DNA of 63,835 bases, filler included, from Perkinsus chesapeaki ATCC PRA-425 (taxonomy: Eukaryota > Protista > Perkinsozoa), in the NCBI GenBank assembly GCA_013115145.1. It is 13 parts of 13 records of this genome, joined end to end, with 100 filler letters (N's around TTAATTAATTAA, not from the genome) between each part and the next. Parts side by side here need not be neighbours in the genome. Positions count along the whole stretch, not along the records: positions 42,122 to 46,526 come from JAAPAO010001267.1; 12 more parts are not named here. The stretch is one strand, 5' to 3'. A program made the translations under genes and the position numbers. Below, one piece after another: positions 241-46,526 of this stretch (its first letter is position 1; each line of letters begins with the position of its first letter). The notes under the pieces were generated by a model. It did not search any database, was not told the DNA's origin, and saw only the letters and a list, made by a program, of their open reading frames with translations.

Positions 241-3200
241 TCAGGGATAGGCAGAAGGGTCGAATCTCTCTGGTAGTCTCCTAGGACGAGATGAACGACG
301 CAGGACAGGGTGACTCTCGTCCAGACTATCGAGACTACAGAAACTAACACGATCAGTAAGGTTAGATGAAGAGTCACTAGAAGTACTAGGACTATCATCA
401 ACACAATCATCAAACTGTATACATGGAACATCCGAAGAATATAAACAAGTACCATCAGAAGCATTCAGTTTGTATAATGGAGAATCATCATCATTTGAGT
501 CGAAATTGGGGCGAAGTAGACGTAACTGTGATGGATGAGCTACTTGCGCCTGATTCGTGTCAAGAGAAGTAACTTGCACACGTGAAGGCGAAATAATTTG
601 TGATACAACATAATAGTCATTCCCATAGATTGGGCTTGTCTGAGGGAAGGCAGAATACTTGACACGTTTCAGAACCAAATCACCAATTGCAAAACTTGGT
701 TGCATAGTGTCACCAGAAGCGTCAACATGTTGCTTCACGGTTTCTTTCACCGATCTCCATACAAAAGAATTACCAAAGAAGATGGCAGCTGGACTTAGTT
801 GATGATATGAATGAGTAAGAGAATTATGTACATGGACTGCACGAGCTAACCAATATGAAACCATATGATGAGTCACCGGTTCTTGATCATGATGTTGATG
901 TTGTAGTTGTAGACATAGTATAGATTGTCGTAGTTGTCGATGAAAACGCTCAATAATACCATTACTCTCGGGCTTATTGCTAATTGAGAATCTCTGCACG
1001 ATATTCCGGCTGTGGAAGAACTGTTGCATACGAGCAGATCGGAACACAGCTGAATTATCGCAGTAAACTTCCTCCGGTAGAGGGTACAGTGAGAAGTATA
1101 TGTTGAAAACCTTCAGAACGCTATCCGTCGTTTCTCCCCCTCGAAGTTCGAAGGCGAAGGCGTAGCGGGAAAAACCATCCATGATAGTGAGTACTGGACC
1201 AAGGAGGGAATGTGGATGCGTAACGTCAAAGTAAAGGCGTTGCAAAGGCCTCTCCAGAGAAGAAGAGAGTGAGCCACCATGGCGATGATGTTTACCAGTC
1301 TTGGGTTTTGCTTGTAGACATATCTTACAAGAACCAACATAATCACAAATATCCTTGTCCATAGAAGGCCAATAGTAGTGTTTAACCAATTCTTGCTTGA
1401 GCTTAGGGACTCCTGCATGGTTAAATTCTTGATGAATATCAGCTATCAAGTGACCACGCTCAGATCTTGGAGGAATAGGAACCGAGACTGCATGACCAAA
1501 ATGTAAAGGAATATAGGACCGATAAATTATCCCATCTCTAGCTGATAATTGTGGATAGCATCGACGATATTGTTGAGGTACATCTGAAGAAAGAGGCTTG
1601 GAATCTAGAAGCAACTGTACCAATTTTTGTAAGTCTTGATCGTGCTCATAATATGTAGAATCTGGGCGTGTAGAGCGCAAATTAGATATAGCACCAATAC
1701 ATTGTAAGGCCGGTTTGGAGACAACTAAATCCAGGGGTAGAGTTGGTATCCATGACTGCCGGGAAAGATAATCAGCACGAGCATTATCTTCAGATGGAAG
1801 AAGCGTCAGTTCGAACTTGATGTTATTGTCATTAAGGTACTCAACGTGCTCTCTAATAGCATTAAGAAGGCGATTTATCGCTTGCCGTTCGACAGTTTTG
1901 GTCTTGATAGTTAGCGGGGAACCTCGGCACCAACGATAAACAGTACTGCTATCCACATAAGCCTTTACTGATGACATGGGGAGACCACGTTCTTCATGCC
2001 ATAATACAATAGAACTTAAGCCTTCGGCGAGGCTTCGAGCTTCCTTCCTATTGATATGCCATACCGATTCACGTTGAGACCATGTTCGGGAGACTTCTTC
2101 TAGTGGAACATTACCGACCATGATAGAGTATGCTCCAGCAATAGATGATGCATCGGAGTGCAGTTGAATGTCAGTACTTGAGAAGGAGGCGTCATGAATA
2201 CAAGTACCTTTGGGAATAAAAGACTCCCATGAACGGATAAGAGCTTGTAGATGAGACAAAACACTGGGGTCGGTAATGACCGTGTCCCATTTTGGCATCT
2301 TACCGGCAAAGGAGCGTAAAGAGTCACAGAGGCTACGGCATTCTGGATGAAGTTTCAACAAGTCCGAGAAATGCCCAGCAATTGAATAGACCATGCGCTT
2401 GGTGAGGTGGTTCACATCATAGTCGGGAATAGATTTGACTTGGCATCTCAGTTGTAGACCACCATCTTCACTGAGGCGTATCAGATAGCCAAGATGTTGC
2501 ACCCATGGAGTAGGACCATCTGCTTGGTGTTGAAGTAGGGACCGTTTTGAAGAAGGAAAATCCCAACCGAGGATGCGGGCGAAGGCGGAAAGGTCATCGG
2601 CATATTGAGAAAGGTGCTGACCTACAAGAGAGAGATCATCATAATACCAAACGTGATATCTAACTGAAGAGCTGGACGGACATTGCTGAAGTACTTCATC
2701 AAAGTGATGGGTTGCTTCCAACAAAACCTCTGGCCCGCAATTGATACCAAACAGCATTCGTTGGCAAGAATACACATGGCCAGCTATTAGTACAATTATG
2801 GGTTGTACAGTTCGAAATCTATAATAACATTTCGAAAGATCGAGCAGCATTATCTCGTCTCCAAATTGAAAACGAGAGCGAAGACGATTAAGAACTTCAG
2901 TAGTTGAAGGACCCGAGTAACTTGATGGGATATCAAGTGAGCGGTTAAACGATCTTAGATCTATTACTGGCCGTACAGGCGTGCTATGGCCCGGTTGCTT
3001 CACTGGGAAGCAGATAGCAGTAGGGGCGTCTGGTGGTATATCATCAGGTTTGATCTCTGTCCACCATCCTTTAGACTGGTAGGAAGATATCTCGGACCAG
3101 AATAGGGCCTTCTCGTTGTCGGAGAGTAAGTCCAGAAGGTTCTGCGAGTAGTCAACAGGCTTGGTGGTATTAATCATTCCATCATCTTCTTGCCAACGAA

Positions 3201-4924: not shown

Positions 4925-5579
4925 GTATAGTTGCTTAATAGTTACTTCATAGTTATTCATAGTTCTTTTTAGAGTCCTAAGTGTAGGTTCTCTAGTTCTA
5001 AGTATTGGTTAAGTTCCTTTGTTGGTTGCATTACTAACTAAGGCCTTATCTGGTATTATTTAAGAAGTTATTGAGTTATATCAGTTGGCGCGTGATTGGT
5101 TCACACACACAAACTCCTTTTTATAAGGCTTATTAATATATTCTTGCAGGGTGGCTGAAAATGGAAAGAATGAACCTTTCCACTCTTTCCGCGAAGCAAG
5201 CTTTCCGTCGGAAAGCTTGCTCGAGGAAAAAATGGAAAAAAACGGAAAGAATGGCGAAAACGCGAGTTTTTAAGGCTTTTCGGGCGCTTTTCAGCAATTT
5301 CACGTTGCCTCAGACGATAGATTGCGGCCCATGATTATTGGCTTGAAATAATAGGAAGAGTAGCGGTGTAGAACTTCGAGATGTCGATCAGCCCGGGTAT
5401 AATAGATCGAGCCGGCGAGTGCAAGAATCGATTACTTAGGCGCGCGCAGAGGCGCTACGACTACGGACAATTCCTCATCTGAGTTGGCCGGTGACCGAGA
5501 GGGCATTCGGAACCTATCAGTCCGTCTAATCGGAGGTCGCAAGATTCGTGCAAGTCCCGAACAGAACCGCCCGAGACTC

Positions 5580-5679
5580 NNNNNNNNNNNNNNNNNNNNN
5601 NNNNNNNNNNNNNNNNNNNNNNNTTAATTAATTAANNNNNNNNNNNNNNNNNNNNNNNNNNNNNNNNNNNNNNNNNNNN
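5580..5679. other. Artificial contig linker
   Basis: N44-TTAATTAATTAA-N44 (stop codons in all six frames). Confidence 0.98.
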
Positions 5680-5752
5680 GAAATTGAAATTTCATGAAAT
5701 TTCATGATGAAATTTCAACGCCTCCGATGAAATTTCATTTCGGAACACCCTA
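5680..5752. repeat. Probable DNA-transposon terminus with subterminal palindromic repeats
   Basis: Four copies of the palindrome TGAAATTTCA, ending in GGAACACCCTA (reverse complement TAGGGTGTTCC...). Confidence 0.45.
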
Positions 5753-9727: not shown

Positions 9728-12422
9728 CAGTTAGGTAAAAAACCGTCGAACGGAATAAAACCCTAACGGCTAATACATGCCAGTCTCATCAGTCTCGTCT
9801 CATGCTCTTATCGCACGCCACATTTGGGCGAGGATCAAATCACATGTGACACGAGACAGATTACGACCTCACAGTACCACCAGCCTCACCAACGCCTTTC
9901 GATGAGCCATAGATGAGCTGGCAGTGGGGGCACATTGCCTCTCTCGTCCGGGAAGATAATAAGATGTCGGCAACCATCGCCATCTCAGGTAATTGTCTCA
10001 CAGTTATGAGGCAATAATAAAGACCACTTCTATCCCATCCCCCACATATGCCGAGAGTTGCCACCTCCGATAAATGAAGCTTCAATTGGAGGGCAGTTAC
10101 GGTAACTTGAATTAAAGTGCGTGCTGGCATTCTCATATAGGTGTACGAGTGTAATCAAGACTCCTTGCTGGGTGTCTCTTGGTGCTCCGTGTCATTAAGG
10201 CTTAATGATTAAGCCTTCCCGCACTCACACAACCCGTTTGAGCATGACATAAACTAATCTATGAAATGCGGGATAGTTTATATCGACAAACTTAAGCCGT
10301 CCAATGCATGCACTCTCCAACTAACAACGATGGATGACACATAATTGGTATCCCCTGCAGCATGGGATGAGACGCTTGCTCTTGCATGGCGCTTACCTAT
10401 TGTAGGGTTCGGTTTGGTGGCGCGTCCACGGCTAGTCGGGGGGCCCCCGACTAGCCCAACATATGCCCGGCATATGAGTCTCACAAGGGTGGAAGAATTA
10501 CGAATCATAATATATGGCGAGCATCATGATTTATGATGCTCACCACATTTCCGATAAATATAGCTCCTTTACGAGCTTCGCTACGGAGTTGTATGCATAG
10601 ACAGAGGAGATAACCTGGCAGCGCGTCGCGAGCGCAAAAGGCTAGCTTTCCACATGCGTGCGCACTGCTGCAGTGTTATAAAACACCACAAGGATAAGAT
10701 ATATCCGAAAGGGGATAGAGCAGTAAACAGAGTGAGTGACGAGTAGAACATCACGAGTGGATAAAGCTAGTAATAGTGTGGTACAACAATTGTGCGATAG
10801 ACAGGAGCTGTGTGAGTAACCCACAGTGGGTTATATAGTGCACTGCGCAGGTGACGCACCGTCTGTGGTAAACCATGGGACCTAACTGATGCCAAATAAG
10901 CAACCTTGGGTAATGTGGTGCCACTTTCGTTAGCCTTCATGGTACACAAGGGGTTTTAGTAACCTCGTCTAAGTCTAAACTCTCAGCAATAACTGGTCCC
11001 TGTCGCCGCTCGATGATGAGGAGTCCTCATTGACGCATACCTATACGGTATGCGTGCGCCAGGTGTGGTGTATGCCTAGTGGTGTGCGCGCATCGAGGCT
11101 CACGGTTTTCCATTTGACACGGGTCAGCTCCTAGTGTGACCCACAGAGATAAGAATAATCTTGTAATTACTTGAAGTAATTTACTTCGGGTATGTTTCGA
11201 GGCTCGGAATTCGAGCGATAGTGGCGACCCACACCGATAGCTGCAGCAGTTTATTTTACACAGGCACCCAGTGGCGATAAATCGATTTGGAGAATGGTGA
11301 AGCATGCCACCATGCTATCACTGTAGTCAGTCTTGTGAAATAGATACTCCGCAGATGAGGTTGCAGCTGTAGCAAAGAGTTTCCCTCTGCAACTCAACGC
11401 CTGCTGGAATCTGATTTGCTGAACAGCGTTCAGTGGACACTCCGTTAGCCACCCAAACTCAACCTCCTAGAGTACTACACCTTTTTAACATCAAGCTCGC
11501 ACTCGACTGGCAAATTTGAACGTACGAATCCGAAACGGAAAGATCTACTTGGGATTTTCGATTTCGCCATGGGATTCCCAAGTTCGACAAAAAAGTTGGC
11601 AGTACCAACTTGGTACGGTCAAGTTCGCCGGTTGGACAATGAATTTCGCCGTAGGATCTTTGATTTCGCGTTCGGAGTCCGGATTTCGGACTTCAGTTGG
11701 TCAGATACGATGTTAAGGGTGATATCTCATCTTCTAGATTTCTATGACCAGATTTTATTGTTGAAATTGAGGCTGTCTCCCATCGCCTCGGGGTCTTTTT
11801 CCGCGTCATTGCCTCCCGCTGGTTCCCAGGCTTCGGCACCACAACCACCGCTGATGAATGAACATACGCCGACTGCATCTGACCTACTAAGCGTTAGAGT
11901 TAGCAGCGATTCGTATGACCATGATTTTTCGTGCTCTCACTGGTACTTTAAATTTGCAAACGAAGCGAACAGGGCGGCAAAGAATATAACAATGTTGTTT
12001 CTCGGAGCAGCGGCGGGTGACTCTGACTGGCCAACTTGCCCGGGCCAAGTGCTCCCGACTGGTGAGTGAGCTTATCATTGTTTCAACAGGCCTCGGAGAC
12101 TCGGATTCTGATATGGACTCTGACAGTGATTGCATGCCCCCATTGAGTTATCGTTCACTCGGTGACATGATGTCACCGATGTCCGCGATGTCACTGACAT
12201 CGCGTTTCCCAACGGAGTGGGGCGATTCGCGCCGCGCGAATGAGAATAACGATTCAGTTGTGATGCAAAGCGGAGTGACACATAATCACTTCCATCGATC
12301 AGGAGGGAGAAGCCCCATGAGAGATGTTGGAGGCAGCCGGAGCCTCAATGACGTCACAGAGCTGGTACCACTCGCACTCATCAGTGTAACCGAAACTGCT
12401 GACTGACTTTCGAGAGTTCACC

Positions 12423-42121: not shown

Positions 42122-42311
42122 CTAAGGGTGTCGCAAGCACCGCTCCTCTATCGGGCAAAGATGGGATATATAACAGAAAAGGAAAGAAAAAAACCCACCC
42201 TCCCAAGGGGAACACGCAGAGCTAAGGCCTAGGCACGACCAGCGCTCTCCCCAATGACATTAGTTAGGTTGTGCTTGGACCTTGGTAAACGTGTATTCAA
42301 CACTAATTATC

Positions 42312-42356
42312 GGCTGTGTGGTCTAGTGGTATGATTTGCGCTTTGGGTGCACGAGG
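42312..42356 (+). tRNA. trnP: tRNA-Pro(TGG), 5' part (acceptor, D arm/A box, anticodon arm), interrupted
   Basis: GGCTGTG TG GTCTAGTGGTATGATT TGCGC TT TGG GT GCACG AGG; the sequence then stops resembling tRNA. Confidence 0.85.
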
Positions 42357-45295
42357 GCTGCGCGATATAGTGGGTTATTCGCGCCGAAGGCGCGAAAAAT
42401 TTTTTTTAGGAAAAGAAGAGAGAAAAAAGAAAAAGAAGGGAAACATGAGCAAAGAGCCGTTAAATCTTTACGATGTTGATAGCTGCTAATTGTGTTACAC
42501 TTACGAGTAGTACAAAAAATAACACCTTAGAACTGGACACAATTCGGCAAGCATTGACAACATCACGGTTATCATTTTCATGCATTTTTTTGGGCTGCCA
42601 GCCACAGATCATAGTCTCCGTCGGTTGCGGGACAAAACCAGCCTGCCGATTTCCCATTGATCCATGGTTTCTTGTGACCAGTGAGACCTGTCTTCTCGGC
42701 GCCACATGAAGTGCAACGAGGTCGCTTCCTTTCACCCCCCTTCCAGTCTTCAGGTACATGACGCTTACGATCCACAAGCTCGTTCGAGCAGGCTGGAACC
42801 TCGGTAGTCTGCGAATGCTCTTGCTGAATATTTGGCCTTGCCCTAGGTGCCGGTTTGCCCCTTGGTTTTGCACGACCGCGGTTCCGCCGGCCAGCTTCTT
42901 TTGCTTCACGGATACGTAAAAACTCAGACATCTGCTTGGTCGACTTCCACTCCTCTAAAGGGCCATCGTGATTCGGGCAATACCAGGGCCCGACATAAGA
43001 CCGACCTTCGAATATCACATTCGGGCGGAAGTGCGAAGTTCGCACTGCGAACCTTCAAAATTGAATTTCAGTCCATCTGGACGGTCCAATCATAGCGGTT
43101 CCTACCTTTGCGGACTTCACGACAGACACCACAACGAATTCCATCTATTTCTATAGCAGTTCCGGTCTTCTCTGGGGGAGGTTCTGGTACCCGTGCCTCC
43201 ATATTGGGTCGAGGTATTGGTCTCGGTGCCTCTGACTGGCTTGGCACAGCTGGAGTTACAGCCCTTGCCCCTGATGCCAACACCTCGGCCATTCGAGTTC
43301 GTCTGGCAGCTGTCATCACATCAGGCACAGCTGCTGAAGCGCCCGCGAGTGCTATTTTCTTCTTGGTTAGATAGGCCTCAACGTGGAACCTAGAGGTAAC
43401 CAAAATCGGTGTGTTTGGATCTTTAAGCTTCTCTTCGAGGAACCAGCGATAATACTGCCGATGAATCTCGCTGATGTCTTGTTCACCGACGGTGGCAGCC
43501 AGGTCATCCAATTTCTGTTTCATTAGAATCGTGAAGTTTTCAGGGCGTGCTTTCTGGAGAAAGTTAGAGTTTTGTCCAAACATCCGGAGTTTTGAAATCC
43601 TGCGTGAAGTGCTTTGAGACTTGGATGCGGACACATGACGCTCATTGCGCCCTATGTCTTGCAAGGAGTGCTCAGTCTCCAGTATTTCCAAGACACGGTC
43701 CATACTCCAGTTCATTGCATATGCCTCATACTCGTGTATGTCCTCACTGTCAGCCACTGTTTCGCCAGGGCTAGCTTTGCTCAATTCGTCGACCTCAGCT
43801 TCAGCTAATTCACGCCGAATGGCGGCTGTATATTCTAGCCCAAATTGTTCACCTACATTCAATTAATCGGCCACTAAGTAAGAAAAAAGCCTCACCCGTA
43901 TCGGTAGCGTTCAAAACTAAGTTCGGATAAATAGTCTCACCATCGCCGGATGAGTCCCTCAATCTCAGGAGAACGGCGTTATCGTAGATGGGATAAACCG
44001 ATCTATGCCCTTCAGCTTTGCGGCGAACATTGCGGTTGTATCGCATTATACCATCTATTACGAGAACCTGGGAAGCAAGTGTGCCGACATTCGTGCCACT
44101 CAGATATGAGGCCTGCCAACCGTGAATTCCTTCGAGTTGGCTGCTGCCTCGATAACATTTATATGCCATCAACGGCGCTTCCTTCTTTCCTTGGAAGTGC
44201 ACAATCCCTTGTTCCTCGTATAAGGGGATATTTTGGGCATCGGATACACACCCCATCCGTACATGATGAATCTATACAAGGATAAATGACCCGGAAATGC
44301 TATAGTTTACAGTATAAACTTCATACAAAGAGTATCAACCTCTCGTTTCTGTGGCTTACTTGATTAGCCAAACAACGATCGAATCCATCTGGCCCTGGTG
44401 GAAGTAGCAACTCCCCTTCCCACTCGACATTCCGAGCAGCATCGACGACGGCCAGTATCCTTTCTTCAAGCTCTTCCTTGACCGGGACTTGACGACGCAC
44501 ATGCTTGTAAAGCCATGGTGGCGACTCTTTCAGCTTAGCAACTGCATCAGCAGGGTCGTTCAATCCGAGGCAATCATGATGGCTTCGATGAGAAGCTTCA
44601 TGTCATTTTCGTTCACCTTAAATACTGCCTAAAGAATAGTGGCCAAATGGAATCGTAGCACAACTACCTGTGACAATTCCCGCATAAACAAGGGATGGGA
44701 GGGGTGGGAGCTTCTACTACATGCTTTAGAAAATCTCCATAGTAGATGGAATACATCTAACTTCACTTGAATATTCGGGAATATTTCCTGTAACATCTTC
44801 TTGTACGACCCGCAACACTGTTTATCGACGTATGCCAAAGTTGGATATGGCACATTCAATGAGTCAAACCTAGTCTTTAGCCCGACATACAGCTGTCGAA
44901 CTTGGATGTCCGAGTCTGTTTCGGTAAACCCGTGACAGAGGACTTCGCCGAATTCATTTAAGACGGAATAACTCCACTTGGCGCCTGCCTGTGATGTCAC
45001 TTTACCCGCCAAAGGGCGGGTATGGTCCCCTTTAAGGATTCGCCCCGACAGACTCCTCATCTCTTGAGCTAGTCCGGGTTGACGCACGATAAAGTCTTGA
45101 ACGTAAACCGACATCAAGTACTCTCGACATCGATCTGAGTCCGCGACATTCCACCCATGGGATTCGCCTTGGTCGCTCATGCTGCCGAAACATGGGAACC
45201 CTCCTTCCGGTATTTTATGTTGTATGAAAGGTGACAGACGACCCTTCTGGGACGCTATCTCCCATTCCCGACAGTGGAGTTCATACTGAGCCCGC
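42357..45295 (-). mobile_element. Dada-type DNA transposon within tRNA-Pro (truncated at the transposase 5' end)
   Basis: Lies exactly between the tRNA-Pro 5' and 3' parts; encodes a Dada/DUF6729-type transposase; GAA-loop hairpin near the 42357 end. Confidence 0.8.
42578..45293 (-). pseudogene. Dada-like (DUF6729-associated) DDE transposase, spliced, N-terminally truncated, one frameshift
   Basis: Exons give ILKGDHT, VLNEFGEVL, AYVDKQCC, VKLDVFH (DxxH), SHPSHPLFMRELS, KHVRR, SDAQNIPLY, YRGSSQLEGIH, GEQFGLEY, and two C-terminal CxxC...W(Y/F)CP fingers. Frameshift near 44565. Confidence 0.8.
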
Positions 45296-45336
45296 TTGGG
45301 TGCACGAGGTCCCGAGTTCGATTCTCGGCTCAGCCC
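45296..45336 (+). tRNA. trnP: tRNA-Pro(TGG), 3' part (anticodon loop, T arm/B box, acceptor 3' strand)
   Basis: TTGGGTGCACGAGGTC CCGAG TTCGATT CTCGG CTCAGCC C. Confidence 0.85.
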
Positions 45337-46105
45337 CTTGGTGTACTAGGTTTTGAGCTCTGTCTGTAACTCTGAAATTTCAGGTTGTGCCGCGGGGGAA
45401 GTTGGCAGCCTTCCGAGTTTCAGTACGTTAGTAACTCAGAAAGATACCAATCAGGTAGTCGAATGATTTGAAATTATCATAATTTCATAATTCAATTATG
45501 TAGGTTGCAATTTTGGGAAGTATTTTGAGCACTACCTTGGAATGATTGTGACCCGCTCTTTGGTGCGTCACGTTTCTTGCAGTCGAGGGTGCGCGCACGT
45601 GTACAGCGTGCAAGCGTAGTCGATTGTTTGAGTGCGTCATGTGGGTCACAAATTGTGACTCACAATGTCACATGATGTGACACTTTGCAAACATCAGTAA
45701 TGAACCCGAATCGCTGAGCGGACTACAAAGATGCCCTCCAGATAATCTTTTTTGGAGGTGTTAACGAGCTAGTGGCCGAAGTCCTAGCAGCAACCCACAG
45801 TCCAACTCTCTGCAATCAAAGGAGTTCGGTTGCCCAGATGCCGCGCGAAGCGCGGCTGATAATCTCAAGGAGGTATAATGTAGAGGCCTAATTGTATAAG
45901 CGTGCATGATTTCCTCCCTTTTTCGACCGTGGAAGAAAACGGTTTCGTGCGGTTGAACGCGCGCGCCTCCAGCGAGTTTGAACGCGCATGTGTCTACGTG
46001 TCTGCGTGTCGAAAAAGCCGTGACGCCGAGCTACCCCCTAGCACAACAGCATGTACCACTGATAATGAGTGAATCGAACATAGTGACTATGTACTGACTG
46101 AATTA

Positions 46106-46225
46106 CTCCTTCTTCTTCCCTTTTCTTCCCTTTTTTCCCTTTTCTTCCCTTTTTTCTCTCCTCCCTTTTTCCTCCCCCTTCTCCTCCTTTCTTCCCTTTT
46201 TCTTTTCCCCCCTTTTTCCCAGTCT
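46106..46225. repeat. Polypyrimidine low-complexity tract
   Basis: About 120 bp made almost entirely of C and T on the + strand. Confidence 0.85.
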
Positions 46226-46362
46226 CTTTTGCCCCGGGTCTGGGCCTGGGTCTGGGCATATAGTTAGAAGCCGTGTAATACACGGTAGCATAACATTCAC
46301 GTTGTGGCTTGTTCATTCCCAAAAGTACACTGCGAGCGTCATGATTTTTTACAAATTTTATC

Positions 46363-46434
46363 GTTTGTGTGGCCTAGTGGTATGGTTCTCGTCTAGGGTG
46401 CGAGAGGTCTCGAGTTCAATTCTCGGCACAGCCC
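46363..46434 (+). tRNA. trnP: tRNA-Pro(AGG), one acceptor-stem mismatch
   Basis: Cloverleaf GTTTGTG / D arm / CTCGT-CT-AGG-GT-GCGAG / TCGAG-TTCAATT-CTCGG / CACAGCC-C; pair 2:71 is T:C. Confidence 0.85.
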
Positions 46435-46526
46435 AGTGTTGTACAAGGCTTTCGCTGTGGTAACTTGATTGAGGCCTTTATCTTGAGCCGCCACCGATTG
46501 GTCCCACCGATTGGTCCCGCTTCCGA

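Follow-up and report, generated by a model that had tools for sequence, protein, structure and literature searches.

The window analysed here, a stretch of 63,835 nucleotides (nt; filler included) from the shellfish parasite Perkinsus chesapeaki, holds at positions 42122–46526 the entire 4,405-bp contig JAAPAO010001267.1 (assembly GCA_013115145.1), on which a proline transfer RNA (tRNA) gene, tRNA-Pro(TGG), is interrupted at 42356/45310 by ~2.94 kb that carries the remains of a transposon assigned below to the Dada superfamily. Among DNA transposons, the Dada superfamily is described as the first found to target multicopy RNA genes strictly. No tRNA was called by ARAGORN in the interrupted sequence, and joining the two halves gave a 73-nt tRNA-Pro(TGG) with one C-A and one T-T mismatch. 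An exact 14-bp direct repeat (TTGGGTGCACGAGG) is placed at 42343–42356 and 45296–45309. The insert silences one member of a multicopy tRNA family and is tolerated by the host. The contig is only 4.4 kb long and comes from a fragmented polyploid assembly.

The antisense transposase gene of the insert

The transposase gene lies on the minus strand, antisense to the tRNA, and is composed of five exons separated by four GT-AG introns of 39, 88, 43 and 61 nt, found at the same positions in a Perkinsus olseni relative. The first open frame (183 amino acids, aa) retrieved 494 HMMER matches at E ≤ 0.001 and 106 at E ≤ 1e-10, the distant ones being long proteins from fish, sea urchin, priapulid and others that bear the Pfam domain DUF6729 (PF20499). 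A Pangasius protein matched with E = 2e-29 (identity to the fish proteins is ~33% over the core), and has the blocks ILKMDSTKK..LAG, LLYVD..CC and RLDIWH.MRR in common with the named zebrafish Dada of Dataset S1 in Kojima and Jurka 2013 (PMC3706591), the reference alignment used for all motif columns. There, the first D of the window protein (LKGDH) falls in the column of VLKADH, the second D (YVDKQCC) in that of YVDKDCC, the DxxH motif (LDVFHLLWRF...FMRELSQAVF) in that of LRLDAFHFMRRF...YPEFAS..DLR, and the E (RGSSQLEG) in that of GSTSQVE. A C-terminal CCHC finger extends across exons 4 and 5 (CGVC-x9-H...GPWYCP), as in the Dada arrangement CxxC...H...WYCP, and a second C-terminal finger reads CTSC-x9-H-x13-C. 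The N-terminal region of the P. olseni proteins P0002 and P0162 matches PF20499 with E = 2e-10 (..PCIKDH..RFRCTTC..) and is a candidate for the CCCC zinc finger that Dada proteins carry at this end. On the basis of the homology to fish Dada proteins and of the motif agreement with Dataset S1, the window protein is assigned to the Dada superfamily.

Other searches gave less. None of the five open frames exceeded the threshold against Pfam (DDE_Tnp_ISL3, E = 0.29), the homologue search with exon 4 (264 aa) found no protein in the searched length band, and the language-model and structure search placed MULE, Transposase_mut and ISL3 as distant neighbours. No terminal inverted repeats were found in the window insert or in the full-length P. 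olseni relative, whose size of ~5.65 kb lies inside the range of complete Dada elements (4.7–11 kb). The duplications that characterize the superfamily measure 6–7 bp, and its authors also met apparent 8-bp repeats (PMC3706591).

The closest full-length relative, P0162 (KAF4663562.1; 1,091 aa as predicted, in a protein of more than 1,091 residues), is encoded on 60–90-kb contigs of two P. olseni assemblies (L006 and L007), in several exons that run antisense to the tRNA; it combines the DUF6729 zinc-finger region, a DDE/DxxH core and CCHC fingers at the C-terminus. In a tblastn comparison of P0162 with the window the homology sets in at residue 503 (RRAQYELHC), precisely where the insert meets the 3' part of the tRNA, and the internal homology to L006 ends at ...CATACTGAGCCC (..GAGCCC, 45293). 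The window copy lacks the first ~502 residues, the DUF6729 zinc-finger region included, together with the promoter, and what is left of exon 1 offers no start codon from which the full protein could be made. The insert measures 2,945 bp versus 5,653 bp for the L006 element, with ~2.7 kb lost on the transposase 5' side. Past a 1-nt frameshift in exon 2 the spliced frame is open for 599 codons to the stop at 42580–42578. Across 814 codons aligned with P. olseni, pN is 0.17 and pS 0.83; dS is saturated, and pN and pS are therefore reported in place of a dN/dS ratio. The low pN with respect to pS indicates that the transposase lineage is under purifying selection and evolved as a working gene, the damage being recent or local.

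The window copy is best described, from its alignment with the full-length relative, as an internally deleted, frameshifted and non-autonomous relic of a Dada element. It is unable to make transposase and is probably no longer able to move. The deletion would be a repair event begun at a cleaved element end, perhaps aided by a shared TACTG, and the frameshift would have been acquired afterwards. The protein annotated in this contig (KAF4650401.1, 'hypothetical protein FOL47_001175, partial') thus corresponds to a dead-transposase fragment and not to a host gene. An origin of the 5' truncation as a retroposed copy was ruled out, the introns being kept and poly(A) being absent.

A previous reading of the window from sequence only had proposed a tRNA-Pro(TGG) split by a Dada-type transposon of ~2.9 kb with an antisense transposase bearing D, D, DxxH and E. 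The split gene is recovered by ARAGORN once its halves are joined, the four catalytic motifs are present, and the Dada origin is borne out by the HMMER and Dataset S1 comparisons, but the insert is a deleted and frameshifted relic and not a complete element. That reading had not seen the loss of the ~502 first codons, the four GT-AG introns, the frameshift, or the probably composite nature of the 14-bp repeat.

Insertion site and flanking repeats

The natural tRNA-Pro of P. olseni reads ...GGTCTAGTGGTATGATTCTCGCTT(T/C)GGGT GCGAGAGG TCTCGAG..., and the inserts sit between the 3' strand of its anticodon stem and the T arm (tRNA-Pro nt 39–46) in four events from two species, namely the window, L006/L007, L003/L005/L008 and an 85-bp solo end. 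The window locus and the P. olseni loci have no flank homology, and the inserts were therefore counted as separate events. In L006/L007 a full-length element of the same family (A) lies between two tRNA-Val genes, at a place where the Val-Pro array predicts a tRNA-Pro, with junctions ...GGGTG GCGAGAGG | GCTGTGCGATATAGTG... and ...GCGCTTGGGTG GCGAGAGG | TCTCGAGTTCGAC... A second family (B; P0151, P0011 and P0166, proteins ~58–66% identical) occupies one locus in L003, L005 and L008, and its transposase-5' end reads ...GGCGCTTGGGTG GCGAGAGG | TCTCGAG... The target is multicopy, with 8–11 tRNA-Pro genes per 14–22 kb in the Val-Pro arrays.

The 85-bp insert splits a tRNA-Pro(CGG) of P. olseni (CGC-TTCGGGT) after GCGAGAGG (L003:16795–16960 and L008:11885–12048, minus strand). 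It retains natural tRNA on both sides together with an 8-bp duplication of GCGAGAGG (7 bp should the terminal base of the element be G). Its sequence can be aligned to the terminal ~70 nt of the family-A end, which identifies it as a solo end or miniature derivative of the large elements. A tRNA intron was ruled out for this insert by its position at nt 46/47 and not 37/38, by the 8-bp duplication and by its alignment with the large-element ends. The flanking repeats vary in length, from 8 bp at the solo end to 14 bp in the window and 37–40 bp in L006. Read against the solo end, the 14-bp repeat of the window probably consists of a 7–8-bp duplication, (G)CACGAGG, and six element-end bases, TTGGGT, that copy the tRNA. 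The transposase would make a staggered cut, with (G)CGAGAGG as the 7–8 bp duplicated in P. olseni and (G)CACGAGG as those duplicated in the window.

Taken together, we regard it as very likely that this family inserts specifically into tRNA-Pro genes of Perkinsus, the window copy being its internally deleted Dada relic. Several points weigh against this assignment. Only four insertion events in two species were examined, three of the P. olseni loci are each known from alleles or strains of the same site, and the specificity thus rests on few events; the census of copies is incomplete, eukaryotic genomes having been reached only via exact-protein look-ups. Natural sequence is found on both sides of the duplication only at the solo end, whose two copies represent the same locus, so that the 7–8-bp duplication rests on one insertion. 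The frameshift near 44570 could be an assembly error, and the Dada papers examined contain no transposition or DNA-binding experiment for any Dada element.

Two flanking arrangements also count against it. Family B is bordered on the other side by a 5' fragment of tRNA-Val (..GTCTAGTT|CGCGCTTTATTGCGCC); this fragment (GGAATGGTAGTCTAGTT) lies at the transposase-3' end and the 3' part of tRNA-Pro opposite (L003:14090–14125, L005:4777–4812 and L008:9193–9228, minus strand). Such flanks, drawn from two different tRNA genes, resemble those of zebrafish Dada-tL_DR, attributed there to one-ended transposition. At L006, a direct repeat of 37–40 bp (95% identical; 5284–5323 and 10946–10985) flanks the full-length element, and both of its sides contain the element-type spacer CCACCTAG(A/T)ACTG instead of the natural one; upstream of the left repeat, GGCTTTGA resembles the natural start of tRNA-Pro, GGCTGTGT. 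This long repeat, with its non-natural tRNA sequence, is not explained by a simple 7–8-bp duplication. It may have arisen by conversion between its two copies, by the replacement of target bases during insertion, or from a solo end that already occupied the place. Target bases are replaced on insertion by the fish elements Dada-tA and Dada-tY (PMC8869645).

Additional relatives and interrupted tRNA genes were observed. A tRNA-Val is cut in its T arm (..GTTCGATTCTCGGT|GAAGGGGAGGTTCCCAG) at L008:2921–2942 and L003:7807–7820 (minus strand), beside a gap of ~1.9 kb in a Val-Pro array that is regular elsewhere; another insertion may lie in the gap. A third and more distant relative, from P. chesapeaki (L004; ~50% identity, 3'-truncated), has no tRNA-Pro fragment alongside and other tRNAs nearby, and so yielded no junction of use here. 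Two of these tRNA genes (L004:159–247 and 540–625, minus strand) contain internal extra sequence, one of them with repeated CCTTTTAAGGCC-like units around the anticodon; the extra sequences may be introns or further insertions. A further contig, L001, is without flanks.

Table 1. Features of the interrupted tRNA-Pro locus, in window positions.
Feature	Position	Strand	Remarks
tRNA-Pro(TGG), 5' part (acceptor, D arm with A box, anticodon arm, start of variable loop)	42312..42356	+	83–92% identity to P. olseni tRNA-Pro genes
Left copy of probable target-site duplication, GCACGAGG (7 or 8 bp)	42349..42356	+	length inferred from the P. olseni 85-bp solo end
Transposase-3'-side element end, GCTGCGCGATATAGTG..., with perfect 8-bp-stem hairpin (42378–42396) and T8 run (42400–42407)	42357..42407	+	81% identity with the P. 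olseni element end, junction included
Exon 5 and stop: end of first CCHC finger (..H..WYCP), second finger CxxC-x9-H-x13-C	42578..43044	-	
Exon 4, C-terminal region as far as CGVCREVRK	43106..43852	-	
Exon 3, catalytic E (SSQLEG)	43896..44271	-	
Exon 2, segment past the 1-nt frameshift (~44570)	44360..44569	-	IMVAFGLQDP unbroken in P. olseni; frame shifted in the window
Exon 2, segment ahead of the frameshift (AVFKVNENDMKLLIEAIMI)	44570..44628	-	
Exon 1 remnant: D (LKGDH), D (YVDKQCC), DxxH (LDVFH)	44668..45293	-	starts at the equivalent of P. olseni residue 503
Last 8 nt of transposase-5'-side element end, GCTTGGGT; deletion junction 45293/45294	45294..45301	+	matches L006 element terminus ...GTACTGCGCTTGGGTG
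Right copy of probable target-site duplication, GCACGAGG	45302..45309	+	
tRNA-Pro(TGG), 3' part (T arm with B box, acceptor)	45310..45337	+	fold of the joined halves
Neighbouring intact tRNA-Pro(AGG), target site empty (GGGTGCGAGAGGTCTCGAG)	46363..46434	+	ARAGORN; 1 kb downstream

The anticodon stem of the split tRNA-Pro(TGG) (42336–42360) reads TGCGC/GCACG versus the canonical CTCGC/GCGAG, with one compensatory pair (T-A to G-C), one wobble and one C-A mismatch. The mismatched base is present in both copies of the duplication, and the mismatch is thus older than the insertion. Between the two tRNA-Pro genes of the contig lies a 120-nt polypyrimidine (CT-rich) tract of low complexity (46103–46225), and the contig end shows an exact 13-bp tandem duplication of CCACCGATTGGTC (46491–46516).

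Element ends and their likeness to the target

Natural tRNA-Pro, family A, family B and the solo end have in common the layout GGTCTA, 13 nt, CGC, 7 nt and the duplicated octamer, which on the transposase-5' end of the elements amounts to an imitation of tRNA-Pro nt 10–38 (~29 nt). The 13-nt spacers are wholly different, the gene having GTGGTATGATTCT and the three element ends CCACCTAGTACTG, GCACAAACAATGG and CGGGTCAGAATGT. Boxes and spacing that are kept while the spacer drifts suggest selection on a bipartite, putative binding site. In the window copy, the 8 nt at 45294–45301 are the sole surviving part of this imitation.

It is possible, and we propose it tentatively, that the transposase-5' end is a selected bipartite copy of the target, made of the A box (GGTCTA) and the anticodon stem-loop (CGC-TTGGGTG), and that a single DNA-binding module serves for both element end and tRNA-Pro. 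In this scenario one DNA-binding surface would read the target and the transposase-5' end alike, and each insertion would regenerate the target by rebuilding a target-like site next to itself.

The transposase-3' end (42357–42407) has no tRNA imitation, and no inverted partner of the imitation was seen at that other end. Its hairpin, TTCGCGCC-GAA-GGCGCGAA, is 100% identical in P. chesapeaki and P. olseni, and it is followed, in the sense direction of the tRNA, by a run of T residues (T8 in the window and T6 in L006, with T7 near the start of the solo end). Placed just inside the element, this run would stop the read-through of RNA polymerase III from the orphaned A box.

In the 400 bp next to its tRNA-imitating end, the L006 element shows sub-terminal direct repeats with GGTCTAC at 5478–5511 and 5652–5685 (TGGACC..TGGTCTAC..GAAATTTTT) and a 26-nt near-palindrome at 5365–5419. 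These repeats and the near-palindrome may be further putative transposase-binding sites.

Other origins, and the place of the family within Dada

The exact 14-bp repeat and an upstream frame that is open up to the junction would also be expected of a complete short element, a Dada variant that transposed as such and left an unusually long 14-bp target-site duplication. This is very improbable, given that the coding homology to P. olseni begins at residue 503 at the junction, with no promoter, start codon or N-terminal zinc-finger region, and that the last 8 nt of the insert match the terminus of the 5.65-kb relative. Besides, the solo end has an 8-bp duplication at the same site, and six of the 14 repeated bases are explained by the terminal imitation of the tRNA. 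The possibility that the sequences come from an assembly chimera, or that a split tRNA arose by chance juxtaposition on a short contig, draws on the small size of the contig within its fragmented assembly and on the finding of the sequence in only one public run, probably the source data. We consider it extremely improbable: the two halves, put together, are recognisable as a tRNA-Pro, the duplication is clean, and the same architecture recurs on 60–130-kb contigs of three independent P. olseni assemblies.

A different route of entry would be a Campbell-type, homology-driven recombination of an element-borne tRNA-like segment with the gene, in which the long repeats are att-like and DDE cut-and-paste plays no part. 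The full-length P. olseni copy, bordered on each side by element-type sequence in its 37–40-bp repeats, agrees with it, as does the observation of Kojima (2022) (PMC8869645) that target bases are frequently replaced at one junction, or at both, when Dada elements insert. Nevertheless, no recombinase is encoded, the sole gene being a DDE/DxxH transposase under purifying selection; the solo end keeps natural tRNA up to a clean 8-bp duplication; and repeats of 8, 14 and 37–40 bp are less easily reconciled with an att core of fixed length than with conversion or tandem events at a later time. Such an entry is judged very improbable, and transposition of a Dada family into tRNA-Pro is the reading retained in what follows.

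The presence of Dada elements in tRNA genes of Perkinsus has been on record since 2013, with tRNA-Leu, -Ile, -Gly and -Tyr as targets; the families of P. marinus are Dada-tL_PMar, -tIA, -tIB, -tG and -tY, and Dada-2, -3 and -4_PMar (PMC3706591). The P. marinus elements resemble the present family in host genus, in the DDE/DxxH core with C-terminal CCHC fingers (two also in Dada-tL_PMar), in the lack of terminal inverted repeats and in inserting at one set position of a multicopy tRNA gene. By its motifs (LKADH, YVDKDCC, LDAFH, GCLSDP, STSQVE, YRYN) Dada-tL_PMar is the nearest described family, and the sole one described in Perkinsus that shares the blocks. They differ in that a tRNA-Pro target is not listed among them and in that tIA, tIB, tY and tG use nt 8–13, versus nt 39–46 here. 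Moreover, P. marinus Dada are stated to have no introns (PMC3706591). The window family has four, all GT-AG, and is thus an exception to what was said of Perkinsus Dada in 2013. The diagnostic peptides FTETD, GWNV, LEGIH, HLLWR and DKQCC of the window family are absent from Dataset S1, so that the element belongs to a different family.

The fish elements Dada-tL, -tA, -tD and -tV (PMC8869645) are likewise inserted near the anticodon arm in opposite orientation to the tRNA, with occasional two-tRNA flanks and element-specific sequence replacing target bases on one or both sides; in contrast, they use other tRNAs and exact positions, encode distant proteins (~33% over the core) and measure 5–11 kb. 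Dada-U6 and Dada-U1 (PMC3706591) have sub-terminal repeats at a fixed distance from the duplication, as a result of which their duplication seems to exceed 6 bp. The imitation in the window family extends this pattern, and differs from theirs in being bipartite, ~29 nt long (GGTCTA-13-CGC-7) and restricted to one end. A DDE core with C/DxxH after the second D is also found in MuDR, hAT, P, Kolobok and IS256; the window family is set apart from these by the lack of terminal inverted repeats, scores below the Pfam transposase thresholds and strict targeting of RNA genes.

Neither a tRNA-Pro target nor the name 'Dada-tP' was found in PMC3706591, PMC8869645 or the wider literature searched, Repbase and Dfam being outside this scope, and the element appears to represent a Dada family whose target is absent from that literature. 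The sequence-only reading had suggested a Pro-specific family, a possibility now supported by independent P. olseni inserts at the same tRNA-Pro position. Its list of tRNA-Ile, -Gly and -Tyr as Perkinsus targets agrees with the P. marinus descriptions but omitted tRNA-Leu. As for its claim of a new target for a sequence-targeted transposase, tRNA-Pro stands as unreported, but only the Pro target is new, antisense insertion near the anticodon being already known from the four fish families.

The locus adds tRNA-Pro to the list of Dada targets, and an element end that copies the target with the spacing kept points to the bases that the transposase may read. If the copying at the transposase-5' end is indeed self-mimicry, it would account for the replaced flanks, the apparent duplications of unusual length, the solo ends and the mixed flanks met across Dada, and would provide a testable recognition code for a sequence-specific eukaryotic DDE transposase.

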